DNA from: Bugula neritina
Taxonomy: Eukaryota; Animalia; Bryozoa
Assembly (NCBI GenBank): GCA_964035545.1
Contig: OZ037771.1
Span: 7,535,190-7,599,189, forward strand
Reading direction: 5' to 3'
Length of the DNA: 64,000 nt
A program made the translations under genes and the position numbers. The notes under the pieces are model-generated. The model was not told the origin of the DNA and did not search any database. It worked only from the letters and a program-made list of their open reading frames with translations. Position 1 is the stretch's first letter; every line of letters begins with the position of its first letter. Shown here one piece after another: positions 5,013-60,400 of the stretch.

Positions 5013-8000
5013 ATGGCTGACTCTACCAGCTCACATGGCTCTGCATCTGGGACGAGAATCTGTGAGAAGGAAGTGGAAGCAAGCAAATCTGTGAACAATA
5101 TCCTAAATGAAGAGTCTGACGCTAAAAAACTTGAAACTGAGTCACCTGATTTAGGTAAATATGCTGAGTGTATAAAACTAAACATTTCACAGCGTACTAT
5201 TTACTATGCACTGCAAATTCCACCCTATTCTAATATGAAACAGTTTATTTTTTGTCATCAAAACGAAGCTTTATGTAAAACTAGAACTTGTTGTAAAACA
5301 TGTTTAAAAAGCAAAAGTAATTATTTTAGCATTTAGTCAATTAAAAACATACTCATAGTTGTTTTTAAGAAAATTTAACACTTTTGTTATATTGTGCAAA
5401 ATTAATACATAAAATTGTCCAAGGAATTAATAGATTAAATTGTCCAATGGATTATTACATTAAATTACATTCAAGAAATTAATACATTAAATTGTCTAAG
5501 GAATTAATACATTAAATCGTTCAAAGAGATAAGGTTTTACTATAACGTAAATTTATTCTAGGTTGCAGTTACTTTTATGTTTTAAATAAACTCTGCTATC
5601 TACTTTCTGCATGACACACTTTGGACAATAACTTTGAAACATCAACAGAGTTTTGTTTGTATGCCAAGCATTGCTGACAAATCATATTGTTGAAAGTTGT
5701 CTGCACATGTGTGAATGATCTGAAATGAAACAGAACAGGGCAATATTATTACAGTGGTAGCTTGTAGCACAAAGTGCATGTTTTTGACTCAACAGTTTGC
5801 AGCAGTGGGTATTCTCCTCCATATATTTTGAATAGCAGAATTCCAAATAGTAATACAACTTGTATTTTTCATATCTTATAACATATAATTAACATATAAC
5901 ATAATATGCTATAGAATAATAGGATTTGATTTAATATCAAAAATAATGTCTATGTAAGGGAGTTGTCTACTTAAAACTTGCGGTTTTAAATGTTTCACAA
6001 TAATATGGCTATGAAATTTTATAGGATTATACCTAATAAAAAGTATTAAAAGGTGTTTATATCTATAAGCTTAAATGATGCAACGGTATATACTAATACT
6101 ACTTTAATGAAATTTGTGCAAAGATAAGTATGTCCGGGCATTTACAGGCTAGCCACGCCTAGTTGCTCATTCATGCTTATATCAAAATCCATTAAAGCTT
6201 CTAAGGTGTGGTGTTGGTCTAGAATTACTTTGTACATTAAATTATGACACATAACTTTTAATTTATGAATTGTGACTCAGAATTTTTTCGTCAAAGTATT
6301 ATCTTGAATTATTGCTTTTAAAAATGAAATACAAAAACATTTATTGTGCTATTTAAATACAGTGACTGTAGCTTGACAAGCATATTTTGAAAAAATGTAT
6401 CAAGAGAAAATTAATGTTAAAACACTCAAGTTTTATGACAAAAAAATTTATTTTTGCAAATTATTGATTTATTAAACTTTTGCATCTAAAACAGACGAAT
6501 ACTTAGTTTTGATATAATATAAAATTGATCTTTCTTAATTTTAGGCAAACAAAGTTTATATAAATACCCGTTACAAGCAAATTTTTATATCAGCATGTAT
6601 ATAATAACTCGATGAAGTAAATTATGATTATACCTATTTGAAAAAATATTATAGTAATCTAATGTTTCCATGGAGTATGTGCTTTAAGAATCTATCTGTC
6701 TCACAATCAAATATAAGGCTAGTAAAACGAAATAATGGCCGGAACAGGTCTACAGTTAAGAAGGAAAGGGATAATTGAAAATAACTTATGTCTTCTTGTG
6801 ACCTAAGAAAACTGTAAAGCAAACATGTTGAATCATAATCTACACAGATCTATAACATTGTAGTACATAAGCCATAAAATGTCATTTGTCTTCATTATCA
6901 ATAGAATTTGACATTGAGAGTGTCTTTGTATCCTTATTTGAAAATGTAAACAGCCTAAACAGTTGTAATACTTCATACTATTTTTTAAAATTATATATTA
7001 CCTTGCAGTAATATATTTTCTTTTTATATAACATATACTTACGACAGTAAATTTTTTTAAATTTTAAGCAGCACTAAGCAAAAGTATGGCTAATTATTAC
7101 TGCAAGATTGAGTTGTGTTATACGTTGCGCATTACACAGCAGTATGACATTACGTAATACTCTTCCTGTTTGTTGGTCTTTTTTCGAATGTTGTTTTAAG
7201 TTTTTATTGTAATTATTGTTCTTGTCACCTATGTTGTTTTTCACTACTTCCAGGCAATCACCAAGGTGTGTTATATATATTATAATACTGTCATACAAAT
7301 TTGGTGTATAAGAACATTGACATTTTGTTTTCGGATGTAATTATTATGAAGGGATTTGATTGTAATACTCATGCTCATAGTCATAGTGATTGATCTTAAC
7401 ATTTATATTACTAACAGCTACTAATTACTAATACTACTAATTACTACATATGAACATTAGAATATAATTTTTATCCTAATGAATATGATGTAATGTTTTT
7501 CTATTATGCAGCAAGTATTCAATACATCAGGAGTGTAGTTTGCTAAAGCATAACATTAGATTTTACTGTTATATTTGTTCAAAAGTGCCATTGAAATCCT
7601 ATGTCTTATTTTGCAGAGCAAGAAATATATTGTCCGTTAACTGAAGTTAAATGTCACACTAATTTGTTAAAACTTGCGAAAGAATCTCAAAAAGACAGTC
7701 AAGCAAGTGAAACTAATACTAATGACTACATAATGAGTACAATGGATGACCAACAAGTGTCTGATGAGAATATGGCAGCTGTTGAAAACAATATAAATGA
7801 AGAAACAGTCCAAATAAAAGAAATGAACCTAAATATTCAAGAATTGCCAAATGGAGAGAAACAAATTGTAGAACCTCAATCTAACCTTTGCATTGCTGAT
7901 CATGGCCAAGTCTGCAATGAAAACAATAAGGATAAAACTCGCTACTCAATACCAAAGATAACCGTAACTAACCCTGATAACTTAACAGAGAACCTAGCTG

Positions 8001-11000
8001 ATTTGCCTGGTTTGGGTAACGACACGCCATCATCAAGTCTTCAAGCTATGCATGAGACATGCCCGTATACTTCTGCTAACGTCTCCCTTGGAAACCAAAG
8101 CACTGTCATGAGTCAGAGCTCTTTGCCCGAAGACGGAGTTGATGCAAAACACAGTCAAACATGTGTTAACACTAGTGAAGATGCTTTTGAAAATGCTAGT
8201 GACCACACAGAACCTCCAGTTCAAGAAGCCAGTGGTACTGACGCATCAGAAAAGCTTTTACTTGAAAAGCAGTCCTCGACATGTTCTCTACAAATAAAGT
8301 CTCTTGATGGGTCTATGTCTCTAGACTTGCCTTCTGCAGAACTAGTTAGTTCAAAACCTGCTGCTAAGAGCAATTTAAGTTTGTCAGTCCCCGATACCAG
8401 TGGTGGAGATTATGCTCAGAATTCAGTTAAACCCAACACCAAAAAATGTTCTTCAGCTGAAACTTACCAAGAGCATACTCATAAAAACCTTTTAGCTAAT
8501 GTTGAGTTCAAAATAGTAAACAAGAAGATTGTTATTCAGAGTGAAAGCTGTCTCACGGCCCAACAAACGTCAGAACTTGGAGGTAACGTAGCCGACATTC
8601 TTTTCAATGAGGTTGACGAAAATTTTGTTACCGACAAAGCAAACCAAGAAAAAGTCAACAAGTGTTTTTACAACAATGAGAGTGGTTTGCCGGAAACCAA
8701 TGCAAAGTCGCAAGATCCTGTTGAGCTTGATTCCTATGATTGCAATAATTCTCATAATTATGAAGAAGAATATCTGCTAGCCGAAGCAGAGTCAATATTT
8801 TTTGCTGAAATTGAAGAGAATTTGAAGGAGATTCAAAGGTCAAATGTCACTTCAGTCAAGAACATAACTCCGAATGATAATGTTTCTCAAACTAGCACAT
8901 GTCATACCTTGAAGCTACAAGTTGATCAGCTACACAAGTCTTCCGAAAAACCTGAATTTACGGAACATGAGAAAAAAGCCAAAATCGAAGCTCCGGAGGT
9001 GAACTCTGAAACTGAGTACAGAGATGGTGTAAACACCATTAAAACCGCAGGAAACCAAAGGCTTGTTATTTCAGGTGTGTGTTTGTGTTTTGTACTAAAA
9101 GTTAGTTTTAATCAACAAATACATATTTGACTTTACATTTTTTCAAAAACAGTTATTTAGCTTTGTTGAAAAGCAAGAATGACATTTTATGGATTTGTAG
9201 AATGGGTTGCTGCTAAACCTTTTCAGCCACGGAATGAAAATAGTTTAAGACCTGAGACCACCCACAAAGAAGTTATTCATCAAGATGGAAGTGCTCAATA
9301 CTTTAATAACAACAACTGCCACAACCGGAGTGCAGTAAGATATATACATTTCATACAATAGTGCAGTAGTTTTGTGGGTGATAGAATGAAATCAGGCAGA
9401 GAACATAACTCCTTGTTATAGAAGAGACAAGAGAGAGAGGTTGCCGTGTGCTTGCAGTACTTTATTGTAGCAGTGAGAAGTATCCAGTGTGAGCTCCAGT
9501 CCGCAAGTGACTGAAGCTCTAAAATGCGTGTCCTTTTATACTGGTAGAACAAAGGACCTCTAGAACCTTCCACCGGGCCGATGTTCGGCAGGGGACACCG
9601 ACATTTGTCATGTCGGTAACCGACACTGGAAATATCGGCAACCGACATTCGGTCTGCCTGCATCCACCTGCCGAAGTCGGTCCAACTGTCGGTTTAGATG
9701 AATCAACAAAAATGAACCCAACCAAGTGTATGCGTATTGTAACTTGTAATTGGGGGAAAGGGGATTAACTATTTACTATGTTGAAAGCTCAACATTAGCC
9801 ATAGTGTTTAAGGTATTAGAAAGTTAGTCTACATAATTAGCTATGATTACAGTATTTAGAAAAATAGCCATAAGTAAAGTGTCAAGGGGGATAACTCTTA
9901 ATATTTACCACAATAGTACATAATGCACTGTTTTAAAAATTATTCCGCAGGGCAGATAATAATATTAAGGATTAGCTATTGTATCCATGACAATAATATA
10001 AATATGTATATTTTAGACCAAGAAGAACATTGTTGCTAATGAATCCGGAGCCCAGGCCGACACTTCAGAATCTCTGGATCACTCAGGTGAAGACAATTCT
10101 CAGGATGATGTGATAGACATCATTGTTTTACCTGATAGTCAAGAGAAACCCGGGCAAGCTCCCCGGCCACCACCACCACAAAGAAATGGTAAATACATAA
10201 TCTTAAAAATTATTAGCAATTACCTCATGTAACTGCATTTCAACTTAATTGCAAAATATATTGCTGCAATTTAAAATCTGATTTAAAAATGTTATAATTT
10301 TCATAAAATTATTGCATGCAAAAAAGAAAACAACTTTTGTGAGCTTTTGCAAAATAAAGCTTAAATAATTGAAATATTCAGCTTCTGTGAGCAAATTTTT
10401 GTTGATACTATTAATGCTTAGCTTTTTCAACAGCCTCAGCAGTCAGAATGCATGCCACCGCACCTCACCTCAGGCCTCGCATGCAAGTCTACTCTCCCAA
10501 CATCTCAAACACAATACAACTGCTACCCACTCCACACATTCGCTTTTTCTCACCAAACCTAGCCTCGGTACCAGCAACACCAGGCCACCGAGTTTCACCC
10601 GCTCTTACGGGTGGCTTTGTAAGGCCCACAATTGCTCCTCCAATGGCTGCACTAACACCTGAATCACCGCTACACCAGCCAAGAGCTCCCCGATTCGTTC
10701 CTGCTCCACCAGCTCCATCTCACTCTCCAGCTATTACCATTGCACCTCGGTTTCCTTCCCTATCATGCCCTGCTCTGCCCTCTCAACCAGTCAACCAGAG
10801 CGCCAGCTGCTTACCAACTCCTTCATTTAATAATCTGCCTCTAGGAAATCACTTGCAAGCACCTAAAGAGTACATTGTCAATCCTACCAAGCTGTTTAAT
10901 GTCCGTGATGGTGTGGTGCCATATCAGGAGATTGATGGGTGTTGCTATTTCGATCCCAGCTACCTGTCTGACAAACCACCACCGGGCCTCCAATATGGCT

Positions 11001-16582: not shown

Positions 16583-17038
16583 TTATATAGAGTAGTATAG
16601 ACATTATATAGAGTAGTATAGATATTATATAGAGTAGTATAGATATTATATAGAGTAGTATAGATATTATATAGAGTAGTATAGATATTATATAGAGTAG
16701 TATAGATATTATATAGAGTAGTATAGATATTATATAGAGTAGTATAGGTATTATATAGAGTAGTATAGATATTATATAGAGTAGTATAGATATTATATAG
16801 AGTAGTATAGCTATTATATAGAGTAGTATAGCTATTATATAGAGTAGTATAGATATTATATAGAGTAGTATAGCTATTATATAGAGTAGTATAGCTATTA
16901 TATAGAGTAGTATAGCTATTATATAGAGTAGTATAGATATTATATAGAGTAGTATAGATATTATATAGAGTAGTATAGATATTATATAGAGTAGTATAGA
17001 TATTATATAGAGTAGTATAGATATTATATAGAGTAGTT
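16583..17038. repeat. 21-bp minisatellite (ttatatagagtagtatagata), about 21 copies
   Basis: Near-identical tandem units; source of the spurious TTLYNIY ORF. Confidence 0.96.
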
Positions 17039-40096: not shown

Positions 40097-43000
40097 CTAC
40101 CACTCTCCATAGAATAAAGGAAACAAGTAAATCTTCCTTCTACCAGTGAGAGTATTTATAACCACAGGAGTCTGTGTCACGTAAACAGTTGGATTTCTTT
40201 CTCTCCTTTTACCAGATATTTTCCTCACTCTGTGCTTCACCTTCAAATATTTTAAAACTAAATATATGCTGTTGTTTGCAGGCATCAAAATTTTTATTTT
40301 TTTAAAACGCTGAATAGAAAACTAGAACAAATGTTATTCAAAGAAAATATCAAGAAATTCTGTTTTAATAGAGATAAAAGAAAGGCATCAAATCTGAAAA
40401 AAAATAATATAATGTGCAGGAAGCTTATAAAAAGTATTATATATGAAATAGAGAACTCAGTAAAGCTCATTCATTCTGCATCTTATACTATGACTATATC
40501 AAACTGCGACTATACTATACTATTACATGACGGTGTTATACTATGACTATATTATACTATGACTATAATATTACACTATGGCTATATTATACTATGACTA
40601 TACAATAACATGACTATAATATTACACTATGACTATATTATACTATGATTATATTACACTATGACTATATTATACTATGATTATATTATACTATGACTAT
40701 ATTATACTACGACTATACTATACTATGACTATACAATAACATGACTATAATATTATACTATGACTATATTATACTATACTATGACTACACTATACTATGA
40801 CTATATTATACTATGACTATATTATACTATGACTATATTATACTATGACTATATTATACTATGACTATATTATGTCTAGTCACTAAAACTATACTACTAT
40901 GACTACACCACACTGACTAATATGAAAACAGACTCTTCTAAATAGGAAATGATGTCACAGGAAGTTACTCACAATATCAAATAAGTCAGCAAGATCACGA
41001 TGACAGCCATGTCTGTGTAAAGTCCTGACAAGTGTTCTTATTAATAATGAGCCACTATCATGGAATCTCATGGATGCACTGTCTATTAAAATAACACAAT
41101 GAGTTAAATGGTAAATATTATACAGTGTATAGTAACAGTGAGTGACACTGCCCAGTAAAAACTAGTGGGAAATGCGAAAAGAAAATTTGAAAATTGTGTT
41201 ATTTCAGCAACGAAAGGTATATCTTGAGAAAGTCACATATTTGATTGGTTTCACAATTACATGATGGCGATCGGGAGTTGTGGCCCGTGATTTAGGTGAA
41301 TAAGGATTAACCACACAGAATTGTTTGTAAGTTAATCATCTCACTTTTTAGGCAGCAGAGTATAAGCTGTACAGACTAGTGTTTCACAGATTACATGAAA
41401 ACTAGATAACTGTAACTCACACACAAATACTCTATGTACTCAGTTCAGGTTTATGAAAGGTCACGTGATTAGACAGCACACCACAGCTAGTGGGGGTGCC
41501 AACATGCAAAAATGGGCGGGTGGAGCACATCAATACTAACCTTTGTTGCTATATATCACTGCAAAGCCAACATTCTACTGACCTCAGATCTGCGAGTACC
41601 TTTTTTGTATCTGGGGGGGTTCTCTCGTGAGAGGGGTGGATATACAGGGGTTCAGCATTTTTCAAGGGGGGACTATGGAACTCTAAATATTTAATTTTCT
41701 GAGTAGTTTAAGTTTGACATTAACAATATTTTCAAGGAATGTTGTACACATATGAAACTTTCTCTAACAAAAGTTTTGACCAAAAATAAAAAAGTGGGCG
41801 GAGCCTATAATATGACAAACTACTTTTTTGCATATACCGGATATTCTCTAAACTGCTACTTTTCTGTTCTAGCATTTAGAATGTTGATTTTTGGTATGAA
41901 AATACTCTATTGTGTTCTAATAATGCTCTCCGATTTTCGTTACGCTCTGAACTATATAACATCTTTCCCAACCATGACAAATAAAAAACATAAAACGGGA
42001 GTTATCTCCTCCGTGAAAAGTTATTGCATTTCTACCCAATAATATTGCTGTTTGTTGATAGGAACAACATCAGCATGATAAAAATGTATTCTTAGTGTAT
42101 TTATATTAGCTTATTGACTTATTTTGAATCATTGATTACGATCAATACTATTGAGTATTAATATTCAATATTTACTGTATAAATTGAGTGTCAGCAATAA
42201 TTAACAGACCACTAATATTCGATTTTTTTATCCATAAGTATAGTAACATAAAATATGGTTCATAAAAAAGTAATATCATGATTTCAGCATCACAAGCAAT
42301 TACTATGCTCTTTTATATCAGATATTGGTAGACATTTGTAATTGTATTTATTTATAAATAAGATAGTATTTAAAATTTTAATTTACAATAGATCAAGCTT
42401 TATTACAAAGTTTTGTTATCTCTAGCGTTTATATACCAAATTAAATATATTATAATTCTTCATCAGAACTGTGTTTGTTGCCATCATCATCATAATCAGG
42501 CTCTTTGTTTGAAAAAGAAAACTGGCCACTTTTGTTGTTGCAATCAAAACATTCACATAAACCACAGCATTTCATCATCAGGCGCTTGCATTTGCATGCT
42601 TTACTCTTACAGCCTGCTTTTTTGCATTTACATGCTGTTAAAATCACATCTGCGTTGCTCTCAAAATCATATTTTATCACAAAACTTAGTCAAGAGACAT
42701 TGCTGAATATGAAAAAGTCACTTGAGGATTCATGTAATCTAAATACAGCATGGCTATTGGCAAGACTTGCCCCAATCAAACTATTTCAATTGGATATAAG
42801 TCCTTCTACATATAACTGCCCCAGCTGGAGTAGCTTCAATGTAAGAAATTTGGTTGCCACAGAAGATAATAAAAGATCAGTCATTGGGTATTGCCCAATG
42901 ATTAATGCACCATCAACAGATCAATCAACAATTTATACAATCCTTCTGCAGCTAAAGAAAACTATGAAAGTTTTAAATCAGAAACATTCAGTAATTACAT

Positions 43001-46000
43001 TTGACCAAGCTATCTACAAGATTGCCAAAGAGATTCAATGGAACAAACCAACTGAATTTTCAAACACAATAATTCGAATGGGCGGTTTTCATATCTTGAT
43101 GAATTACATTGCAGCACTTGGCAAAATGGTAAAATCAAGCGGCCTCGCCCAAGTTCTTGTACACAGTGATATATATTTTGAAGTTACAGTGAAACAGGTG
43201 CTATGTGGTAAGCATTATAACAGAGGTGTACGGGCACACAAGATTTTGTATGAGGCAATATCAAGGCAGAAACTAAAATCTCTTTCGGAATGGCTTCAAT
43301 AAAATAATCAGTTTGACCCATTAGAGTCTCATAATACGTATTTCTATTGATGATAACTTGCGTGAATGGACCACTGTTGCAGCTAAAGTTGCTACTGCTA
43401 TAAAAAAGTTTGATTCTGATACTAAATTAAAATCTAACCTTTCAATGTTCTGGAATTCCTACCTTCATGCAGTAGAAGCCATGTTGGGATTTATTCGAGC
43501 TGAGCGTAGTGGCAACTGGCAATTATATTTGGACAGTATGCAGGCAATGCTACCAGTATTTTTTGCGTATGATCGCACAAACTACTCAAGGTGGCTGCCT
43601 ATATACCTTATTGATATGCTAAATTTGCCTGAATCTGCTCCAGAAGTTTATGGAATGTTTGCAAAGGGTTCATTCACTGTAAACAGGACAGGAAAAAAAA
43701 TTGCAGGTATGGCTCCAGATCAAGTCTTGAAGCAAACTTTGAACCGAGACAGCAAAACATCTGGAGGCATTATTGGCATTAGCAACCATGAAGAAGCTCG
43801 GACAAAATGGTTCTTAACTAGTCATATCAGAGCCCAACTGCTTTCTTTGCAAAAGGATTTTTGCCAAATAGCCTCACAGTCATCAACACTACACAAGGAA
43901 GACACAATCACTACAACTATGACGGATGAGATTGATACACAAGCAATTCTTTTTACATTGCAGCAGTTTGATGTTAAGTTGTTTAGCAATACTTCAACTG
44001 AACTTATTAATATTGCTACTGGAGTAAGTCCCGATGCGGAGACCTTCTTGTCAATAGTGACTGCTATGGCTCAGGGAGGAGAAATGGCTCAAACGTTTTT
44101 TCAAGATAGACTTTTGAATACAATAAAACCATTTTACACTGCTATTCACCGGCTTAAAATCCCTTCCTTTGACTTTGTGGCTAAATCACTTCAACCGGCC
44201 ATTAAACCAATGTTCCTAAAATATCATTTGCTAAACTTCTCATAAGTGCCAAAAGTGCCAAAGATTTGCATACAGTTCTAGAGAAAGAAATTGGTCCCAT
44301 TCCTCTTGCTCTATTTACTGAAAACGGACAGATGAGAAAAACATGCAAATTGCAACTAATGCATATTTTGGAACAGAAATATCTTGGAAACAGGGTCTCC
44401 AATGATGATAGTCAACTGTCCACCAACAAATCGATCATTATTGATGGTAGGTGCATACTTCACTCGACAAAAACATCAGGCACTTTTTATAGCTATGCTC
44501 TGAAGATGTTGGAAATATTTCTTGAATGTGGCAAAGGATATACAAGGGTTGATGTAGTGTTTGACGTGTATTCTGAAACATCAATTAAAGCACAAGAGCG
44601 TATTAGACGGGGTGCCCAATAGATGTGCTCTATTTCCATTATTCATAACAACCTGCCTGTGCCTAAAAACTGAAGTGCTTTTCTGAGCAATATTCACAAC
44701 AAAAATGAGTTGGTAAATTACATAGTGAAGGTGCATGAAGTAGACATATTCAGAAAATTCCAGCTGGTACATTTTTAGTGTGTAGCGCCAAAGAAGTCTG
44801 TGTTCTGCAAAACCATTATCGTTAGAATTGTAACAAATTGAAATCCAATCATGATGAAGCAGACACAAGATTAATCCTTCATGCAGCTGATGCACTGAGT
44901 GATTACGATTTGGTAGTAATAAAATCAGTAGATACCGATGTTGCTATTATTGCGCTTAACATCATCTTAGTAATGTTTTAACTGATGAGCAGGCTAATAA
45001 AGATGTAGTAATCTTCGTTGGAATGGGGAGTCACAGAAGATATATATCTCTTTTTGAATCAGCCAAAAAAATCTAAAAAAAGTTCTCAAGAATCTATTAT
45101 CTCTCCATGCACTTACAGGTTGTGACTCAGTAAGTTCTATCTTTCGAATATCTAAAAAGCGTGCTTTGGAGGTACTTGAAAAGGAAAGCTATAATCTGTC
45201 TTTAGGTTCTGATGATTGGTCCCCAGTATCAGAAGAAACATACTTAGAGTGTGAATGATTTGTCTCCAACCTATATGATGCCTATGATGATATCACTGAA
45301 GCAAGATATAAAATATTGGCTTTAAAAAATGTCTCCAGTGAAGCACAGCTACCACCTAGTAGGAATTCCCTAGAATATCACGTGAAACGAGCCAATTATC
45401 AAGTTACACTTTGGCAACTTGCTTTTACACCTATTTTACTTCATCAGCCAATTTTTGACCATGGTTGGGATACTAACTTAACTCCAATAAAATATGATTT
45501 TGAGAGCAACGCAGATGTGATTTTAACAGCATGTAAATGCAAAAAAGCAGGCTGTAAGAGTAAAGCATGCAAATGCAAGCGCCTGATGATGAAATGCTGT
45601 GGTTTATGTGAATGTTTTGATTGCAACAACAAAAGTGGCCAGTTTTCTTTTTCAAACAAAGAGCCTGATTATGATGATGATGGCAACAAACACAGTTCTG
45701 ATGAAGAATTATAATATATTTAATTTGGTATATAAACGCTAGAGATAACAAAACTTTGTAATAAAGCTTGATCTATTGTAAATTAAAATTTTAAATACTA
45801 TCTTATTTATAAATAAATACAATTACAAATGTCTACCAATATCTGATATAAAAGAGCATAGTAATTGCTTGTGATGCTGAAATCATGATATTACTTTTTT
45901 ATGAACCATATTTTATGTTACTATACTTATGGATAAAAAAATCGAATATTAGTGGTCTGTTAATTATTGCTGACACTCAATTTATACAGTAAATATTGAA

Positions 46001-48458
46001 TATTAATACTCAATAGTATTGATCGTAATCAATGATTCAAAATAAGTCAATAAGCTAATATAAATACACTAAGAATACATTTTTATCATGCTGATGTTGT
46101 TCCTATCAACAAACAGCAATATTATTGGGTAGAAATGCAATAACTTTTCACGGAGGAGATAACTCCCGTTTTATGTTTTTTATTTGTCATGGTTGGGAAA
46201 GATGTTATATAGTTCAGAGCGTAACGAAAATCGGAGAGCATTATTAGAACACAATAGAGTATTTTCATACCAAAAATCAACATTCTAAATGCTAGAACAG
46301 AAAAGTAGCAGTTTAGAGAATATCCGGTATATGCAAAAAAGTAGTTTGTCATATTATAGGCTCCGCCCACTTTTTTATTTTTGGTCAAAACTTTTGTTAG
46401 AGAAAGTTTCATATGTGTACAACATTCCTTGAAAATATTTTTAATGTCAAACTTAAACTACTCAGAAAATTAAATATTTAGAGTTCCATAGTCCCCCCTT
46501 GAAAAATGCTGAACCCCTGTATATCCACCCCTCTCACGAGAGAACCCCCCCAGATACAAAAAAGGTACTCGCAGATCTGAGGTCAGTAGAATGTTGGCTT
46601 TGCAGTGATATATAGCAACAAAGGTTAGTATTGATGTGCTCCACCCGCCCATTTTTGCATGTTGGCACCCCCACTAAGCTGCTACCTGCTCTTTTTATTC
46701 TATTTGTTACTAATTTTCAATTGAATAATGGATTTGCCGTTTGAAAATTTTGGATTGTAAAGCTTTGAGAAATTGAACCCGTGACATTTCGATAATGAAA
46801 TTGGAAAACACCTATTTGGAGAATGGGCAAGTACCAAATAGACAATTGGAAAATAGACAATTGGAAAATAGAGAATATTCAACCTGGCCTAATCCAGAGG
46901 GGGCGTTTAGTATCTGGTCAGGTTCATAAAAGCTTTTTGTAAATGTGAACAAGTTTGAATTAGAACTACTCCCTAACTAAATCTACTTCTATGATAGCCT
47001 AACTGATACGGCCATTATATTTTAGAATTGACCAGATACCGGAGAGCCCCTTAGGACTAGACCATGTTGAATATTTTTCATTTTCCAAATGTCTATTTTC
47101 GATTTGCCCATTTTCTAAAAGTCCATTTTCCAAATAGTTGTTTTCCTATTGTCATTTTCAAAATCTCCTGTCACCATAAAATTATACCAATCCTAAAAAT
47201 GATGCAAGAAATATTCGTTTCTTTCGGTGGACAAAATTCTTACTTTCAAAGCAGGAGTGAAGGATTAGAAGGTCGTCAACATCAAAGTTCCTCTGTCCAG
47301 TTGAAGTCTCAGCTTCCTGTTGATGAGTTCTGAGAGCAGAAAGTTCTGGTGAGGAGGAGTTGGTACTCTGTTGAATATTCTGCTCAGTTTGACTGACTGA
47401 GTTACCTGATTGATTAGTAACACATGAGATATACCAACCAGTATTCTATGTATATGTATGAAGACTAGAGTATCATATAATAAAGTATTACAATAGTATA
47501 ATATATTCTTACTCGTATCATATCTACACTCACCAACTCTGCACGCCTGAATAACCACAACTTTAGGCTTGCCGGCCATGTTGGGAAAATTTGTAGAGTT
47601 AATGAGACTGTAGATCTGTGTTAGATAGACTGGCTGTGAGTCAACTCCATGAATCATTCCATTAGCTCCGTGTGCAAACAGAAACAGGAAGAACATACCA
47701 TAAGTGTTATGAATCTCATCTCTTGTCTCTGATTGAATACACTGGAGTATCTCCTGTATATGAATATAACACAACACACACAGTATACAAACTCAATGTG
47801 AGAGAGTCTATTCTATGAACAGGACTGACCAGCTCTAATAAACATACATTTCTATTCAGTACAGAGAGAATACAAGTAAAGACAACTCCTGGGACTACAT
47901 TTATATATTCAGTGTGAGTGTTAGGAGAGGGGAGAATTATTTTCTTCAATAATTGCAGCTCAGACACAGAATGAAGCAAACATACAAACATAGGGGGAGG
48001 AGGGGGGTGCGACCCAACCATCTGCCAACATCTTTTATTTCAACAACTGCTATCCATATATAGAGGCAACCAAGCATATTTGTCACATCTCATACTAGCC
48101 TCTAGGAAGTTAGCTCCGTGAAGCAAAAGTTAGCCCCAAAGCGAAGAGTTTGCATTTCTCTACTTTAATAACTGATTCAATAGACAAGTCTACAGGCTAT
48201 TATAACATTGAAGTGAGACATTAACCACTAATAACTAGTCACACTACGTGATAAGAAGAGGGAGACAACTACAAGTAAATAGAAATATACCTCAGCTGTG
48301 AGATCCTTCTGCTTCACAACCTCAAATCCCATCTTCCTGAACAGAGCAAATGTGTTGTCAACATCATAACTAGAGCCAAGTCTCTCTCCTACATTTCTAT
48401 ACTTGTTGTTGTTTATAATCAGAGCTCTTCCTCTGAATGGACTCGTCATCTTGTATAT
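40097..48458 (-). CDS. Caspase (p20+p10) portion of the fusion gene: five exons, with the Academ element in the intron before the last two
   Basis: p20: YKMTSPFRGRALIINN...FLFAHG...IQACRV. p10: DDLLILHSCFE|NSASMRFHDSGSLLIRTL...DLADLFDI|VKHRV...QTPVVINTLTGRRKIYLFP. Confidence 0.9.
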
Positions 48459-51400
48459 CTGTAGATACAGACTATGTAATTAGTTTAGTACTTATTCATA
48501 TCATATTATAAGCAACCGTAGAATGATGAGTTAAAAATCATCCATGAGTAGACTAATATGGTTTCGGACATATTTTGTGGCTTTAACACAGCTGCTAGCC
48601 CAAACAGAACTAGGAAAACTGAAAGTACAGGGTAGCAGTTTGTTTCATAGAAAAACAACACCTCACTCACACTTACCATACCTTAGCCCGTAACAGCAAA
48701 CATCAGTCATTTTTACAAATGTCTGAGCTTCCTGTACGGCATTGCAGTACGTTGAGATCAAGCACTACTCGATTCAAAAATGTTGCGGCGGACTTCTATT
48801 GGACCGAAAAATTTTGCGTCAACTCATTGGATATAATTGTCCAATGAAGTGTCACCTAATAGCCAACTTTGAAAACTTCAGACCGGATGCATTAAAAATG
48901 GCTGATATTTTACATTACGGCCTACGGTACGGTAAGTGTGAATGAGGGGTAAATCAATCACAAGACTGTTAAAGGCAGGTTATTTCAAACTTGAAGTAAA
49001 GTTGGTTATTTATAGCGTTAAAAAGAAGGTAAAATATTTTTATAGCTAAGACAGTTGATAAGTAGATGAAAATAGAAAAACAGAGAGGAGAGCCAAGGCT
49101 ATTCGTAGATAACAAAGAGGAGAGCCAAGGCTATACAGAGATAACAGAGAGGAGAGCCAAGGCTATACAGAGATAACAGAGAGGAGAGCCAAGGCTACAC
49201 AGAGATAACAGAAAGGAGAGCCAAGGTTATACAGAGATAACAGAAAGGAGAGCCAAGGCTAGACATAGATAACAGAGAGGAAAGCCAAGGCTATACAGAG
49301 ATAACAGAGAGGAGGGCCAAGGCTATACAGAGATAACAGAGAGGAGGGCCAAGGCTATACAGAGATAACAGAAAGGAGACCCAAGGCTATACAGAGATAA
49401 CGGAGAGGAGAGCCAAGGCTATACAGAGATAACAGAGAGGAGAGCCAAGGCTATACAGAGATAACAGAGAGGAGAGCCAAGGCTATAGAATATTCAACAT
49501 GACATACAAACCTTTGAAGTGTTGATGAAGAGAGACTTGATACTCTGATTAGTAGTAGGAACTAGTGTCAACTTGGTAAGATCTTCTGAAGTGGAGGTAG
49601 GACCTTCTTCTTCATCCGAAACATCACTCAGTACATCATCAGTACCAACAGTATGAGTAGCAGCTCCACTGTGTCCAATATTATCTATATGTACAGGAAA
49701 CATCACATAAACAGCTCAGAGAAATGTAATGAAACCAACAACCTACAGGAACAACTTCAACTGTCAATAACAAACATGGAGAATCAGAAAGGAAGAAAGT
49801 TATTCCTAATCAATTCTCTAGAAGTAAGTTTAATTCATGATACCTGGTGGCTTGTAGTTGGTCTTCACAAAGTCATTCAGTTTCTGCAGCTCATCTCCAG
49901 AAAGCTGGAAAGCTGCAATAGAAGTATGAATTATGGAGGTTGCTATTACTTGAACAGTACATCACCATCTGAATATGCTATAAATAACCTAAGAGAAGAT
50001 AATCATACTAACTCGGGTGTAAGAAACAAGCTGGGACATCTCTGTATGTTCCACATCTACCAGGTGATGAATCTGAAGTCATGGGAAGGGATTCACCATC
50101 TTTTGGAGGTCGACACCAGGGTGGGTTAATGAACCTCTTTGGACGCTTTTCTCCAACCAATGGGCAGTGAGCACACAAGTTGACACAGGTGATTTTACTT
50201 GCTCTCCATGTGGAGTTGACGTACTTTACGGTTGAATGAACTGAAGTGGTCAACATCTTCCATGCATTACCTATCTGTCGACAAGCAGACGTTACAGAGA
50301 TAGTGAGTTTACGAGATTTGTGGTCATGCAGCAACTGCAGGGTGTAAGCTTCGTCTCTCAGCTCCACTCCATTCTTTCTTACAGCTTTTTCACTACAATC
50401 CTGGAGATCATTGAGAAGTTTCACAGAAACCTGGTGGTAGACGTACTGAGGGGGAGTCAAGCCACCAAACAACATGTCTACTGACAGTTTTACGGGTTGC
50501 CTCTTGGAGGCAGTCAAGTCAGTGAAATACTCCTGTGAGAAGTACGGCATAGTGTAACTTAGTTTCTGGGATGAATCCTTCATCTCGAATAACAATTGGA
50601 AAGATTGTAGCAATGCGACTGCCACCTTCATCTTGTCACTCGTGGTGAAGCTGGTCTCTGCTATCAGAAGATGCTGAAACAGCTTCTCACTCATTCTGCC
50701 AGTTCGAACAAACTCTTGAGCCAAATTATTAAACTCTGTTTCATTTTCTATCAACGGATTGTCAAGTGAATCCTCTTCGATCGCTGACCGTCGATTGCTC
50801 CACACTTCCTTCTCGTGAGTGAAGAATACGTGGAGCAGCTTTGTGACCACAGAGATGTCGTAGAATACCAGAGACTGCAAACTCTCCCTATCCTGGTACC
50901 AAATGAGATGGCCGCTGTTATGCATGTACGACAGAATCACTCTCAGCTGGTCTTCATTTGCCAACTCGCATTCAATGACATGTTGAAGCACTTCTGGAAA
51001 TGTCTTGTAACTTCCATGGAAGGAGTTGAATGTTTGAGCAACTTTTCTCCACAGAGTAGGCACCTTCTTCACGACTAGTTTACTGTCAGATATGATATGA
51101 CTTCTCAGCTCATCAAACACCTCTTCATATTCATCACCCACAACATATATATCTTGTTCTTGAAACATCTCTTGGCGCTGAAAATGAGAAATTCCTGTGA
51201 AAAAAGAGCTGGAATAATTCTCTTTAGAATTTTCTTCTAGTTGCAACAAATTGAATACACTTTTGGTGTGGAAAAAGAACAGCCTTTTTAGCTCTTCAAA
51301 TCCATCTGCACTGTAAGCATCTCGGTGAGTGAAAACTAGTTTGGGTGCTCTGAGCCTAGGATTGGCCAGGTACAGATGTGAGAGCCAATCAAAATATGTG

Positions 51401-54400
51401 CATCGAACTGCTTCATTACCATTCACTTCTAAACAAAGCTCTTCAAACTCCTTTAGATTCACAACCACAAAAGGAATACAGTTCTGTTTCAATGTGAACT
51501 GGTAGGTAGATTGGTAGATTTCATTGCCACCAAAATCTATGAACTGAAGAACATTGTCACCAACCACTAACTTTTCCATATTGAAGACACGAGTTGTTTC
51601 ATCTTCCACTGCATCAGCCGCTCTATTGGTTAGTTCCCTTTTGCCATCTGATCTTACCAGCGTTTTTACTAGGCTGGTTTTCCCAGACAAAGACCTACCC
51701 ACTAGAGCAACAGCAGCTTCAGATACTTCTACATGACCACCAGACCTAAGATCTTTATAATACTGTCTGATAGCATGTAGTCCGTTTACACACACAGCAT
51801 AAGGTGGAGATGTGAGTGATTCACACCAGGGGCAGTACAGTTCAGTCAGATTAGGCATGTTGAGAAGTTGAGGAGTTAAAGATGTCATCTGAAAGTTGCC
51901 TGACAAGTTTAGGTGTTGGAGATTCTTGAGTTGACCGACACTACCAAGTAGGCATATAATATTACTTTAGTATTATCCTATATCAAATGTATTATGCTTA
52001 AAAGTAAAACTTGATTAAATACATAATAGGTAAGATCTAACATAGCCTGAGAGATAAATAGTGTTTGACAGCACAACTGTTGTAAATGACTAGAACACAG
52101 GCCAAACTGAAAATATAGACTATAATGATTATATTTTGACTCAACAGTACAACCATTACAGTGAAAAAATTGAGTATAGATTTTCAACTTGCAAATTTTA
52201 TTACATTAAAAAAATTTTAATCTACAATACAATTGCAATATATGGAAATTGTATTATTTCAAAACTATTGCAGTCATACGCAAAAGATTCCACACCCCCA
52301 TGCACTTTTTGCAGCTTTGATAAATGGCTAAACAGGATTTTCAATTTCTCAATACTCTAAAAGACTTAAAATAATGCCAAACTGTTGCATATGGTGTTGT
52401 GTGTTGTCTTCTAATCTAACTAAACAAGTTTAAATAATTTTAAATAATATTTTGAAGTAGTAAGTATCTAACATAGCCTGAGAGATAAATAGTGTTTGAC
52501 AGCCCAACGTGGCAAATGACTAGAACACAGGCCAAACTGAAAATATAGACTATAATGATTGTTTGACTCAACAGTACAACCATTACAGTGAAAAAATTGA
52601 GTGTAGATTTAAAATTTGCAGATGTTATTAAATTTGAAAACTTTGGATCTGCTATAATACAATTGCAATATATAGACATTGTATTACTGGAAAATTATTA
52701 CAGCCATGCGTAAAAATATTGACACCCTCATATATTTTTTGAAGCTTTTATAAATAGCTAAACAGGACTTTCAATCTCTTAATATTTCAAAAAATTTGAA
52801 GTAATACCAAACTGTTGCATATGGTCTTGTATGTTGTCTACTAATCTAACTAAATATATTTAAATAATTTTAAATAGATAAACTACATTTGTTCTAAGAA
52901 GCTCGAAAGCTGAAGTAAATTTTGAAATGTTGTTTACCCATTTAGGCTCATTTTTGCCTCCATACCATTGTACATACAAGGCAAAGTACTGTATTGTGAA
53001 TAAATATTTACAAAGTTTCAACCTTGGGAACAAGCGTTGTGCAACTTGAAATGTAACTGTACTACAGACTGAGTAAGCAGTAATGACATAATATACCTAA
53101 CAAAGCTACTATTTTTCTAAACTCAAACTTCACTTAATTATGGTGAGTGGTGGAAGACAAAATTTTAGCAGGCAGCAGCTATCAAACTAAGAAGTACTAA
53201 AAGAAAAAGCAACTGGGTTTGGTTTTGCAACATTACAGGAAACTGGGGAGTGATTTATGGAATGTCATGACATTGGTGGTTTCATACTTCAAATTGGCTC
53301 ATGAAAATTACTACTCCATGGCAAGAACTGGTGAAATATAAATTTCTGAAGGATAAATTCATGCTGCCAGCTGCGTGGAGATTATGCAGAAAAAAGCAAC
53401 TTTACAGAAAGTAGAAAAAAACTTACTTTCTACCATACTTTCCTAGTAAAAGAGAGAAAATTCAATTACTAGAGTGGCCCATGCAAAAGCCCAAAAGAAT
53501 ATTTTTATAGACAATACAAAGAAGAGTAGCTGCGATAAAACCAACTGAAATGGTCAATTTAGCTAGAACTGTCATCAATGCATGGTACAGGATGTGAGAT
53601 AAATCACAAAATCAGCTGTGTTAGTGGAGAATATGTCAGCCTGCTGTCTAGCAGTCATTGGTGCTAATAGTTACTCACTCACACTGAAACACTGATATGT
53701 TATGTGCAAGAACCTCTTCACACACAATTAACATCTCATTCTACATTCTTCTTCATTTTGCTAACCAAATGAAGAGAAAATTTCAAATCCCCGCACAATT
53801 ATGTTTCAGTGCAAAAATTTTCTAGAGTTGTAGCTCAGTCAATAAATTGCATTTTATATATATATTTAAATTTTTGCAGCATGAAAAATTTCAGAAGTTG
53901 CAAACAAAGAAGTAAACTGGTAAGCAATTTGGGGGTGTCAAAACTTTTACGCATGACCAAATAACATATTGCAAGCTACAATCATATTTATTCAAAGTTA
54001 TTATTATCTATAGTTTATATAAAAAAGATGATCACATATGATATCTTATATGTGTACATAATAGAAGAACATATATAACTAATATAACTCACCTGTCTGA
54101 TAATGTATGTAAGTCACAGCTCCTTAGATTTAACTCTGTAAGTGACTCCATCTTTGGTATCACCTCAGGTAATGTTCCTAACTTATTCTCAGACACTTCT
54201 AATGTGTGTAGATGTGTGAGTTGAGAGAGACTGTAATATACATACAACATACCATGAATATAATTATACAAGTTACAGAAATATTATGTTAAACATACTG
54301 TGAGTTTATTCTAAACTGTTGCTTTGTAAGTATGGATTGTCAGTTAATTGTGTGCAGTAAGGATAGCCAAAAGAGAATAGGCAGTTTCAACATGTGGTAA

Positions 54401-57400
54401 ATATATAGAAAGAATCCTGGTTGCGCAATGCTGACATCCTGTAGTTTGTAATGGAAAGTAAAAAGTATTCAAAAGATGGAAAACCTCTAGGTGTGGTGAC
54501 TATGAAGAGAAGGGAAAGATCACAGAGAAAGTATACGGAGAGAAGAAAAAACAGACAACAAATAAAATTGTAACAGCCAAAGAGAAGGCATATGAGACAG
54601 TCTATGAATACTTACAAGAGATCGAAGCAAAGAAACTATACACCTATATACCTATAAGAACCTATATATACCTAGATACAAGTTGGCCAAAACAAGAAAA
54701 AGACGATTATTGGATATTAATAGAATGAAATTGTGACTATAATCCATCAGAATGGTGACAGCATAAATGAGAATGTTGAGACACATCTTTAGGATAATTT
54801 ATGAGGAGCATATGGAAAATGATGTGATTAGATAACAGGTTGGAGTGATATGAATGTCTATAAACATGAGGAAAAACGTCTGCAGTGGTATTGCCATGTT
54901 TGCAGCAAAGATGATGATATTAGCTTCAACTCCAATGGATTAGAATCAATGGTATAATGGATATGAAGAATCTGACAAATTGAAACATACAATATAATCT
55001 AACAAGAAATGAGGGTGGTCTAGGCCAGTGGCTCCCAACTTTTTTCTACTATTCCCCCATTTAATAAATGTTGACTACCGTATTAATTCCCCCCCCCCCT
55101 TTCGTAAAGCAAAAAAAGTTTCATGACTGACATAATGATAATATAGAATACAATACAATATTGTTTGTTCTATTAAAATATAATTATAATAGTAGTTATA
55201 TTATCGTCATTATTATGTTATGCATGTATAGAACAAGGAGCAGTTCAATTTATAATGATTCTTTTGTGCCAGCTTGCATAAGTCTGCATTGCTGTTTTTG
55301 GCTATGCCCATCTTAATTCACTCTGCAGATTAGGGCAGTTTCTCTTCTCTTTGAATTAATGGGAATCCTATCTCACTTGGAAAGATGGCGCTGGGTGGCA
55401 CCAAAATTCTACTTTGTCAGCTATGTGTGGGGAGAGTTTGCTTGTTAAAACCCAAAATGATTTTAGGTGAAAATGGGCACAAATGGAGAAGTAGGTAAGA
55501 CTGGCACACTGATGGTAAATTGTCCCAAACCCCCACCCCGGCTATCAAAAATTAACCCCAAACCAAAACCTCCACCTTGTATTCAAACCCAAAATCCTCA
55601 CCTCAAATCCGACCCCCAAACGCTCACCCCAATATTGAAAATGGTGCAGGTAGTAGTGAAACAAATGGAAAATTGGGTAAAAATGGCACATTTTTAATAT
55701 TAAAGTTGAAGATTTGGGATTGGGGGTTCAATATGGAGGGTTTCGGGTTCAGCATGGGGGGTTTGAGAAAATTTAACACCAGTGTGCCAGTTTTACTTAA
55801 AATCAGAACAGGTTCTTTTCCTAAAACAGTTCACGGAGTGTGGGGAAAGACACCATATTTTTGATAGACGCCACAACTTTAGTGTAACTTTGAAAACATT
55901 GATACTGCAATGCAAAGCAATGATAAGATTATTTATAGAGATTGGCTTGCTTAATGTTGGCCTATTGGTTTTTGCAAACTTTTTGACATCGATTTAAAGT
56001 AGTTCAGAGAACAATCAGGGTAGAGTAATTAATAAACACTTTCATGTTGAAGTGAACTGAGATTGCAGAATATGGTTTGGTTAAATAGATTAACTAAGAG
56101 GAAGGTTTATAGATATGCATGTACATGTAACATGCAGGAGCTTAAAAAAGCCTTCAATAAACTGCGTGAATTTCTTAAAAACTAAATCCCCCCTAAAAAG
56201 CCCAAACTCCCCTCTAGGGGAGAATTCCCTCCAGCCTGGGAACCACTGGTTTAGGCAAAAAGGGTGGGAGGTTTGTTTAAGAATAATATCCACTTTATTA
56301 CTAGAGAGTTGGTATGCTGGGACTACTAGTATCAGTTCTGTTACACTTTATTATATGTTTATATAATAGTAGAACACATATAACTATTATGACTCACCTG
56401 TCTGGTAATATATGTAAGTCACAGCCCCATAGATGTAACTCTGTAAGTGACTCCATCTTTGGTATCACCTCAGGTAATGTTCCTAACTTATTACCAGACA
56501 CATCTAATGTATGTAGATGTGTGAGTTGAGAGAGACTGTAATATACATACAACAAACCATGACTATATTTATACAAGTCACAGGAATATTATATGGTAGA
56601 TATGCAGTGAATCTAAACTATTATTGCCTTGCTAGTATGAATTGGGTAAGTTATTTGCATTTAAGAATAATATCCATATTATCACTAGAGAGTTGGTATG
56701 CTGAGACTACTAGTATCAATCATATTATACTTTATTATATGTTTACATAATAGTAAAACATATATAATATAACAAATATATCTCACCTGTCTGGTAATGT
56801 ATGTAAGTCACAGCACTCTAGACGTAACTCTGTAAGTGACTCCATCTTTGGTATCACCTCAGGTAATGTTCCTAACTTATTACTAGACACAACTAATGTG
56901 TGTAGATGTGTGAGTTGGGAGAGACTGTAATATACATACAATATTAGTAATTAGCATGAGATGAAAACCATTTATCAAAGAATGGACTAAAGAGTTGGAA
57001 TAAGTTTATAACTCAATAGCAGTTGTAACAATATCAAGTGAGCAAAACATTGCAGAGCGTTTCTACTCTCCGTGAGTGGCTAGTGCTGCGGAAAAAGTGA
57101 CCTTTGACCAGTAAACGAAGGTTGACAGATGCCATGGCAATAAGATAGCGATTGAAGAGAATGAGAGAAGACAATTTCCTGGACTAAGTATAAAGTGATT
57201 GGCAGGTATTATCATACAACCAGGGGATACAATTGGAATAATAATGAAGGTAGTTATTATTTCAGAGTGAATCTAGAAGCATTATAACTCATCTCCTCCC
57301 CAGCAGGTTCAGCTCAAACTAATATAATTCTATTTAAGTACAATAATGGAAACATTTCTATACTTTTCAATTTCAATTCTTTACTGGTCTTAATGAATTT

Positions 57401-60400
57401 CTTTTGGGGGTTTGGTTGAACATAATTTAGTTTGCACTTTTGCTCATCAAGCGCACAGACTTTTCCAAAATTCCACCCTTACTGCACCCACTTTTGTAAT
57501 TCAAGGAAAACAGAATGACTACTCAGGTGCAGTAGGGATATGAAGGAATATTGCTGACATGCCATACAAGTATAACTCACCAAACACTTCAACATTTCAG
57601 TAAAGAGTCAGTGAGTTACAAGTGAAAAATCCACAGCAAGAAACACAGCTCAAGTATATATAATTATCCAAAGAGAAGTCATGCTCTAGAGTCTAGAAGA
57701 TAGAAATATTGTGACCTTAAACATGTTGATAACAAAGTGATGATAGACTTATTATTCTAAACTGTTGATACTGGTTAGCTGTTGAATACACAAGTTAGTC
57801 ACAAGTGGAGCAAACTCTGTTTAGAATATCAATCCTGCCTGGTAAGGAAACATAGTCAGTTACTCATGAGATGGAAGACAAGATGAATACAGTAGAAACG
57901 AGACACATTTTTTGGATAACTTACGAGGAGCACGTTAAACGTGATGTGATTAGATAACAGACTGAGGTGAAAAAAATGTCTGCAGTGGTATTTGCATATT
58001 TGCAAAAAAGAAATGATGAGGATATTAACCTCAATTATAATGTATAAAAATCAATGGTATATGGAGATATTAAAAATCTGACAAATGGGAACATACTATA
58101 AAATATATCAAGAAGTACTGGAGCATTAAGCAAGAAGAAGTCCACAGCCGAGTGTGATTGAGCTGGGAGATTGCAGAACGGCTACCTTGCAGGACTATAG
58201 TCAGTTAGGTGAGAAAGGCGAAAAGTTGTGTTTAATCTTATACTAATCTCTACAGTTTATGTAAAAGCAGTGAACATGTTATGACTCACCTGTCTGGTAA
58301 TGTATGTAAGTCACAGCACTCTAGACGTAACTCTGTAAGTGACTCCATCTTTGGTATCACCTCAGGTAATGTTCCTAACTTATTACCAAACACATCTAAT
58401 GTGTGTAGATGTGTGAGTTGAGAGAGGCTGTAATATACATACAATATACTACGACTATAATTATACAAGTTGTAGAAATATTATATTAAACATGCAGTGA
58501 CCTTTTATTGTTTCTGCTCTGCAAGTATGAATTGTGTCAGTTGATTGTGTTTATGAATTCACTTTATAACTAGAGAGTTGGTATGCTGGGACTACTAGTA
58601 TCAGTTTTATTCTACTCTATTATAATATATTTACATATAATTAGAACACAGATCGAATGTGCTACACATACAAAATTACCGATTAAACCACAGTAAATAT
58701 GGGAAGAAAATGCTTTTTAAAAAATAAAATGATTCAGTGTAACAAATTGCTAAATCAAAAGCAGTTGTAACAATTCTCCTGTAAAGAATATGTTGAAGAT
58801 GGTTTTACTCTGCATGACCAGGTTTGGCTGCCAAGGCAGCCACCTGAGAATTACTGATTACAGAAGGAAAGTAAAAAACTAGAGACAAAACAAGAGAAGA
58901 TAAATCTCCGAATTTTTAATTCACTTAAACTTGACTCTGTTGCAAGTAAATTATGATGCAGTATAAAACTGGCCATAGGTGTGATAGTAGCTGTAAGGCA
59001 GGCAATAACAGGTAGGCCTAAGTAATGAAAAGTCCAACAATTACTTTGAGATAATAAGAATAAAGTATTCACAACCCTGGACTAAGTATAAAGTGATTAT
59101 AAAAGCTGGAGATACAATTGAGATAATGCTGATAGGTAGGAAGGGAGATCTTATTTCAGAGTGACTCTAGATTACTACTCATCTGTATATATAAACTATA
59201 GCTGCGTTCAGAACATATTAAATATAGTTGATTGTTTTACTCCATATTTCATTAATCTAAAAATATAGAATTTTATCCCACAATTTTAGCAACTCAAACA
59301 ACTTCTAAAGCACGGATAATACACTAGAAGGAACGAAGATAAAACTAATAGCAGTGAATACTTTGAAGAATATGAAACAAACCAAAAGCTACAAGTTGTG
59401 CAGGTAAGAATATATTTGATTTGTGATTTCCTCAATGAATATACAACTATCCATTTCTCTACTGCCAGAATAAATATAAAAGTTATCCCCACATGCAGGT
59501 AATCAGCTATGATGTGTGAGTCACCAGAAGTCATTGTTGACCTCTTCCCCAACAGCTTCAGCTCAAACTAATATAATTCCATTAAAGTGCAATAATGGAA
59601 AAAACTCAATATTCTTCAAATTCAATTATTTACTGGTCTATATGATTTTCTTTTTAGGGGTTTGGTTGAACATAATTTAGTCTGCACTTTTTCTCATCAA
59701 ACACACAGACTTTATCAAAATTCCACCCTTACTGCACCCACTTTTATAACTAAAGGAGAACAGAATGACTACTTAGGTGCAGTAGAGATATGAAGGAATA
59801 TTGCTGACATGCCATACAAGTATAACTCAATAAACACCTCAACATTTCAGTAAATAGTCAGTGAGTTACAACTGAAATACTGACAGTGAAATACACAACT
59901 CAAGTATATGTTATTATTCAAAGAGAAGTCATGTTCTAGAGGATAGAGGATAGAGGGATTGTGACCTTAAACATGTTGATAAAAAAGTGATGATAGACTT
60001 ACTATTCTAAACTGTTGATACTGGTTAGCTGTTGAATACGCAAGGTAGTCACAAGTGGAGCAAACTCTGTAACAGCAGGTGGCAGATCTCCCTCTATAAA
60101 TAGGTCAGTGATCACATGACCTGAACAGAGCTTCTTTATTTCCTCCTTTGTATAGAGTTGTGTAGATTTGACGGACAAACTTGTGAGGCTAATAGGATCC
60201 ATACCAGAGTGCCTCCACCAACAGCTGTATTTCTCTGCTAATAACAAATGATCTAGTTTTAGTACATTCGTACCTAATAATAGAGTAAATATAATATCAC
60301 CTGGTTTATAGTACATCTATCTATGGTAAAATTCTAGTAGTATAAATTACATCATTTTACTGTTGAATTACTTATATAATAATTGAAAATATAATCCAGC

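Follow-up and report, generated by a model that had tools for sequence, protein, structure and literature searches.

Mosaic leucine-rich repeat exons under positive selection in a predicted Roco-caspase gene family of the bryozoan Bugula neritina

The leucine-rich repeat (LRR)-ROCO GTPases of the brown algae Ectocarpus and Saccharina have an LRR-Roc-COR core and symmetric repeat exons that vary in number; their exons are shuffled within and between loci, positive selection falls on the repeats' concave face, the genes undergo birth and death, and the proteins have been proposed to be immune receptors (PMC3341825, PMC11378527). Bacterial LRR-AP-GTPase-COR effectors join fast-evolving LRRs to an AP-GTPase (Roc), a COR domain and a C-terminal effector that is sometimes a caspase, and proteins of this layout are predicted to act as counter-invader systems (Kaur et al. 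2021, PMC8195603). Here we describe a gene that shares features with both, on the minus strand of a 64,000-nucleotide stretch of the bryozoan Bugula neritina (contig OZ037771.1; the whole of this stretch is called the window below). It is predicted to encode an LRR-Roc-COR-caspase protein and belongs to a family of close paralogs, whose 138-nucleotide (nt) LRR exons are mosaics and, within each repeat, show positive selection on the strand and on the turn next to it. Concave-face selection on LRRs is in itself ordinary; the interest lies in the protein that carries it and in the mixing at the level of the exon.

In the brown algae each 72-nt exon encodes one 24-amino-acid repeat and inverted non-coding exons lie in the introns (PMC3341825, PMC11378527), whereas the Bugula exon encodes two 23-amino-acid repeats, no inverted copy was seen in 260 kb, and the C-terminus carries a fused metazoan caspase; the word 'caspase' is absent from the text of both brown-algal papers (PMC3341825, PMC11378527). 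The bacterial effectors are encoded by intronless genes and come with many alternative effectors, whereas the Bugula family is animal and exon-built, with a protease nearest to CED-3 and caspase-3 in the PDB. Plant and animal NLRs, together with inflammasome and apoptosome caspases, are alike in their working, with a variable LRR sensor, a nucleotide switch, a death effector and selection at xxLxLxx positions, but the Bugula switch is a Roc-COR GTPase rather than a STAND ATPase, the LRRs are N-terminal and the caspase sits in the same chain. MFHAS1/MASL1 and the LRRK2-type animal Rocos share the LRR-Roc-COR core, and homologs in the bryozoan genus Watersipora are automatically annotated as MFHAS1 homologs. 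To our knowledge, the MFHAS1/MASL1 and LRRK2-type genes are single-copy, conserved vertebrate genes without a caspase, whereas Bugula has about a hundred genes with LRRs under positive selection. Lamprey VLRs, which are extracellular and somatically assembled from flanking cassettes, share LRR modules, a conserved scaffold and a variable concave face, but in Bugula we see a complete germline frame with Roc-COR and caspase, and neither extracellular location nor somatic assembly. Because the protein looks cytosolic and by its predicted domains is a Roco-caspase, the brown-algal ROCOs are a closer comparison than the VLRs. A literature search covering few subscription journals returned nothing relevant on Roc-COR-caspase proteins in invertebrates or on an LRR-Roc-COR-caspase family in bryozoans.

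The first-pass annotation of this DNA had reported four near-identical 138-nt exons that vary almost only at residues of the concave LRR face. The exons are present on the minus strand as described:

58290..58427, minus strand: LRR exon 1, 138 nt, two 23-amino-acid repeats, phase 2-2
56787..56924, minus strand: LRR exon 2, 138 nt, phase 2-2
56398..56535, minus strand: LRR exon 3, 138 nt, phase 2-2
54093..54230, minus strand: LRR exon 4, 138 nt, phase 2-2

An AG acceptor and a GTGAG donor flank each of them, and since each exon starts with one base and ends with two, the introns are in phase 2 on both sides. In transcript order the variable strings read DVFG, VVSS, DVSG and EVSE in repeat A and RLEC, RLEC, HLWG and NLRS in repeat B, exactly as annotated, and just two amino-acid changes lie elsewhere (T>I at codon 42 of the third exon and P>S at codon 44 of the fourth). 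The exon matches Pfam LRR_1 and LRR_4, and its nearest PDB structures are Leptospira 23-residue LRR proteins and SHOC2. Ten x codons among the 45 were defined beforehand from the xxLxLxx consensus, and 11 of the 13 amino-acid variants among the four window exons fall within them (permutation p 4.5e-5). Contig C7 carries, in two clusters, all 40 copies of the exon (88-100% identity), which belong to nine close paralogous genes; 27 copies were read for the site analyses, and the remaining 13, at C7 5.04-5.10 Mb, contribute to the count only. In this wider set, 39 of 59 amino-acid variants lie within the same ten codons (p 1.5e-5). Five sites are hypervariable (codons 11, 14, 34, 36 and 37, with 12 amino acids at codon 37 and 8 at codon 14) and three moderately variable (16, 32 and 39). 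The terminal LRRs in the large exon and the N-terminal cap vary at equivalent sites (segment pN/pS 1.7 and 1.4; pN and pS denote non-synonymous and synonymous differences).

To place these residues in the fold, a homologous array from Watersipora was modelled with AlphaFold (predicted local distance difference test score, pLDDT, 91), and Foldseek paired the model with LRR solenoids. The model's beta-strands line up with exon codons 9-11 and 32-34, and the turn that immediately follows the strand lines up with codons 14, 36 and 37; the invariant core corresponds to the convex helix. On this model the proposed concave-face placement holds, refined in one respect: four of the ten x sites (positions 8, 9, 13 and 31) are almost fixed. 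Exposed residues of the convex side are invariant. Silent variation is also low in the central 15 codons (window 54138-54182 and equivalents), where third-position heterozygosity is 0.017 (at the exon ends, about 0.08-0.13); this near-invariant core, which comprises few sites, could reflect conversion or a splicing element.

The annotation had also proposed diversifying selection, and had suggested that a wider exon set be checked for elevated non-synonymous change at the x sites. Across the 27 exons, pairwise pN at x codons is 0.287 against a whole-exon pS of 0.074, a ratio of 3.9 (bootstrap 3.1-5.1 over exons and 1.6-9.1 over codons; P(ratio<=1)=0.003), and the proposal was not refuted. When each distinct variant is counted once, the ratio is 3.6 at x codons (p 5e-6) and 0.42 at the other codons, whose pairwise pN/pS is 0.26; inside the x class alone this single-count test is borderline (p 0.05). 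Divergence of homologous near-exon intron (0.08) and silent sites of the Roc exon (0.10) are consistent with the pS baseline, and an earlier intron divergence of 0.2, which would weaken the case for selection, proved to be an artefact of non-homologous flanks. Heterozygosity at the x codons is 0.31, 0.31 and 0.10 at the first, second and third codon positions. A local mutation hotspot was rejected, as the third positions of the hot codons are nearly fixed and all four bases occur at positions 1 and 2. Compared with a pN/pS of 3.7-3.9 at the x sites, Roc has 0.25, COR 0.33 and caspase exons 2-4 have 0.14-0.18. Positive selection acts on the strand of each repeat and the turn beside it, and purifying selection on the scaffold, Roc, COR and caspase. 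The ratios come from counts in preference to a tree-based codon model, which recombination invalidates.

The LRR exons are mosaics. All 32 exons from two B. neritina assemblies encode distinct peptides. Exon distance is 0.081 within genes and 0.083 between genes, the tree is almost without resolution, and exons do not group by gene in either. Distances in the upstream flank, repeat A, the core, repeat B and the downstream flank are mutually uncorrelated, upstream and downstream flank types are found in mixed pairings, and 17 of 55 informative site pairs fail the four-gamete test. A simpler scheme, in which repeat A is tied to the upstream flank and repeat B to the downstream one with crossover only in the invariant core, found no support, no pair of segments being correlated. 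The mosaicism is best explained by germline recombination. We propose that unequal crossover and gene conversion recombine the near-identical, symmetric phase 2-2 exons in the germline, both within a gene and from one gene to another, with exchange inside the exon as well; this would re-pair the two variable patches, and selection would retain new surfaces. Every exon that was read lies in order inside a gene, and no inverted or orphan LRR exon was found in 260 kb. The intron between LRR exons 1 and 2 holds a partial copy of the N exon, which records the 2.25-kb duplication that produced these two exons.

The window gene is predicted to be an intact, spliced LRR-Roc-COR-caspase gene, in which 1,241 codons are free of stops after the exons are joined by script. 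Its remaining parts, and two further features within its introns, are as follows:

60003..60202, minus strand: N-terminal cap exon, starting at the likely ATG (true 5' end uncertain); ends in phase 2; 3' end linked to an LRR exon in an RNA contig (loose end at 5388)
57293..57822, minus strand: partial intronic duplicate of the 3' end of the N exon and the next intron (original about 59542-60070)
50013..51940, minus strand: large exon, 1,928 nt, with the last two LRRs, cap, Roc GTPase and COR
49844..49912, minus strand: linker exon 1, RNA joints
49512..49684, minus strand: linker exon 2, acidic, RNA joints
48291..48458, minus strand: caspase exon 1, start of the large subunit, RxG motif; joined to linker exon 2 in the RNA contigs of all 4 runs
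47534..47753, minus strand: caspase exon 2, catalytic His (AHG) and Cys (QACRV); Pfam Peptidase_C14 7.1e-13
47244..47405, minus strand: caspase exon 3, inter-subunit linker and start of the small subunit
40973..41082, minus strand: caspase exon 4, small subunit; SMR where SWR is usual
40097..40240, minus strand: last coding exon, caspase C-terminal strand and stop
41488..46676, no strand assigned: DNA transposon within the intron separating caspase exons 3 and 4, outside the protein

The Roc domain scores 30.3 bits against a Pfam cut-off of 27 (E 5.6e-7), with G1 GRSLSGKT, G3 DFGG and G4 THRD at amino acids 332, 386 and 455, and is directly followed by COR-A (7.1e-8) and COR-B (0.004), in the correct order and both slightly below the curated cut-offs. 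In the caspase, AHG and QACRV align to the His-Cys dyad of CED-3, the best PDB matches being CED-3 and caspase-3. The Arg, Gln and Arg of the Asp pocket are represented by RLG, QAC and SMR in the window gene, with the final Arg replaced by Lys in two paralogs; in place of the canonical QACxG pentapeptide, six of six paralogs have QACRVG. GTP binding and hydrolysis, COR-mediated dimerisation and Asp-specific proteolysis are predicted functions. By inspection, no signal peptide or membrane segment was seen in the gene model, whose 5' end is uncertain, and the protein looks cytosolic. Neither NACHT nor NB-ARC gave a Pfam match in the scanned exons or in database homologs, the nucleotide domain being Roc. 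By its domains, the protein is a member of the Roco family with a caspase domain, and neither an NLR nor a VLR.

Transcript evidence comes from contigs of four public runs, which are recorded as probable RNA and placed on the neighbouring paralog. In these contigs GT-AG joints connect the LRR exon with the Roc exon, Roc with linker 1, linker 1 with linker 2 and linker 2 with caspase; there is also one joint between two LRR exons, and the end of the N exon is attached to an LRR exon. Coverage of the LRR-Roc intron is absent in two of the four runs. Splicing is thereby shown at the family level. In two runs (L002:285-1549) the Roc-COR exon is spliced straight to caspase exon 1, skipping both linker exons. 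This joint appears to be out of frame, and would yield a caspase-less form or stem from another paralog.

The six tandem genes that were read carry 4, 5, 2, 6, 6 and 4 LRR exons. Two of the six have a premature stop in the Roc-COR exon (paralog 2, L002, at codon 99; paralog 4, L007, at codon 577), consistent with birth and death; the LRR exons of both are open and similarly diverse, and may serve as exon donors. Across the six paralogs, identity is 97-100% in caspase exons 1-3 and divergence just 0.018 in the intron separating exons 2 and 3, suggesting that the effector end is homogenised while the sensor diverges. The last two caspase exons are of two types, mixed across paralogs. The genome holds at least 104 Roc-COR exons, and each of the best 30 has, by eye, a caspase exon on the same strand about 1 to 12 kb downstream. 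Far bigger clusters of more distant LRR, Roc-COR and caspase exons lie at C6 2.5-6.3 Mb and C1 32.5-35.5 Mb, with about 30 genes each.

Among database proteins the nearest is from B. neritina itself, with 91% identity and Roc, COR and caspase in one NCBI model from the second assembly; protein searches returned none that holds this LRR exon array. LRR-Roc-caspase proteins also occur in the bryozoan Watersipora subatra, where the exon plan is the same, a 138-nt LRR exon included, and one Watersipora protein contains four 47-residue units, near-identical to one another and variable at similar sites. No clear orthologous locus that would allow an allelic comparison was found in the second B. neritina assembly; its Roc exons match copies in this genome at no more than 95%, its five LRR exons differ from all 27 read, and the two assemblies differ by about 10% in non-coding DNA at these loci and may be different lineages. 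An exon-by-exon search for NACHT, which split genes can escape, gave only one weak partial match in the genome (C6:312551-312682), and NLRs may be scarce in B. neritina.

From the sequence we infer that the variable face is a recognition surface and that the role of the protein is immune. An immune sensor is, in our judgement, the probable identity of this Roco-caspase. The concave face of the LRRs would bind a fast-evolving intracellular non-self ligand, for example a parasite or pathogen molecule, and binding would alter the nucleotide state of Roc-COR and its dimer state. Dimerisation activates initiator caspases. Roc-COR units are known to dimerise via COR in a nucleotide-linked manner (PMC4104024), and dimerisation here would pair two caspase domains and activate them, leading to cell death or inflammatory cleavage without an adaptor. 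The protein would then act as an NLR and an initiator caspase in a single chain. A broader proposal is that cheilostomes rely not on NLRs but on about a hundred such single-chain LRR-Roc-COR-caspases as the chief variable immune receptors inside their cells, with germline-combinatorial specificity generated by recombination inside two-repeat exons and with ligand-driven Roc-COR dimerisation directly activating the caspase; this we put forward tentatively, as a possibility that falls somewhat short of probable.

Several points weigh against these proposals. Ligand binding and protease and GTPase action are predictions from the sequence. The QACRVG motif is one residue longer than the usual QACxG; the caspase part of a full-length homolog model has low confidence, leaving the geometry of sensor-caspase coupling a conjecture; and the RNA joints are pooled over paralogs rather than drawn from one full-length molecule of the window gene. 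The pS rests on few polymorphic silent sites (the codon bootstrap is wide), some of the recombination signal could come from recurrent mutation at hot sites, and the exon-by-exon NACHT search could miss split genes.

Other readings of the locus overlap in part and are not all mutually exclusive. It is unlikely that the protein is instead a guard or decoy receptor, or a sensor of an endogenous signal (stress, zooid regression or symbiont control), with its diversity driven indirectly. The human Roco proteins MASL1, DAPK1 and LRRK2 do function in cell death and signalling (PMC4104024), and brown-algal ROCOs respond to several stresses (PMC11378527), but a fixed host ligand would not predict differences of the binding face in every repeat of every paralog.

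A role in allorecognition, as determinant or sensor of colony fusion or rejection, had been offered by the first-pass annotation as an alternative to immunity. Bryozoans are colonial and among the animals with allo-incompatibility (PMC8195603), and the Roc and LRR exons of the second assembly differ from those of this genome (Roc matches of no more than 95%, and five LRR exons distinct from all 27 read). However, these assemblies are about 10% apart in non-coding DNA and perhaps from different lineages, the diversity lies among paralogs and repeats so that allelic status is conjecture, no signal peptide or membrane segment was seen by inspection of a model with an uncertain 5' end, and any linkage to a fusion phenotype would be conjectural. 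This option is unsupported, and we regard it as quite improbable.

Also unsupported, and a little less likely again, is somatic choice among cassettes, either by Dscam-like alternative splicing or by VLR-like DNA rearrangement. The symmetric phase would permit any exon to be skipped in frame, and alternatively spliced LRR exons have been reported in brown-algal ROCOs (PMC11378527), but the Bugula exons lie in order inside genes, with none inverted or orphaned in 260 kb, and germline recombination accounts for the pattern. The RNA contigs do contain LRR-LRR joints, in which near-identical exons are indistinguishable and skipping is not discernible. A somatic version of the exon shuffling itself seems to us hardly credible. 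Slightly less probable than cassette choice is relaxed constraint, in which exposed LRR residues would drift neutrally while selection or conversion keeps scaffold and silent sites in place. In its favour, change is tolerated at exposed positions, the exon core has very little silent variation (0.017 at third positions) and the unique-event test within the x class is borderline (p 0.05), but the x-site pN of 0.29 (0.40-0.67 at codons 14, 34, 36 and 37) far exceeds the exon pS of 0.074, the intron value of 0.08 and the Roc-exon pS of 0.10, the third positions of x codons are nearly fixed while exposed convex-side residues are invariant, and present counts already point to omega above 1.

If the immune-sensor proposal is true, a large variable immune-receptor family has arisen from a Roco GTPase in an animal phylum, in convergence with the exon shuffling of brown algae and with the bacterial layout of sensor, switch and protease in one chain. 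Caspase activity would then be a simple readout of how an effector is controlled by ligand binding and by Roc-COR through its nucleotide or dimer state, a question that also bears on LRRK2. The nine paralogs, with near-identical protease and switch and differing surfaces, make a clean test set.

Among minor features of the window, the transposon at 41488-46676 is 5.19 kb long, with perfect terminal inverted repeats of 1,190 nt and a fragmented internal open reading frame that ends in a CXC-like segment; its identical arms suggest a recent insertion. A smaller pair of 43-nt inverted arms, 222 nt apart, lies at 55492-55799 in the intron 5' of LRR exon 4 and is probably a small non-autonomous element. 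Introns of the LRR-Roc-COR-caspase gene also contain minisatellites at 49079-49487 (32 nt) and 40483-40873 (16 nt), and a third, with a 21-nt unit, is found at 16583-17037. On the plus strand, 7601-9130 holds a low-complexity open reading frame of 509 amino acids, without a Pfam match, which is probably a big exon of an unrelated gene.

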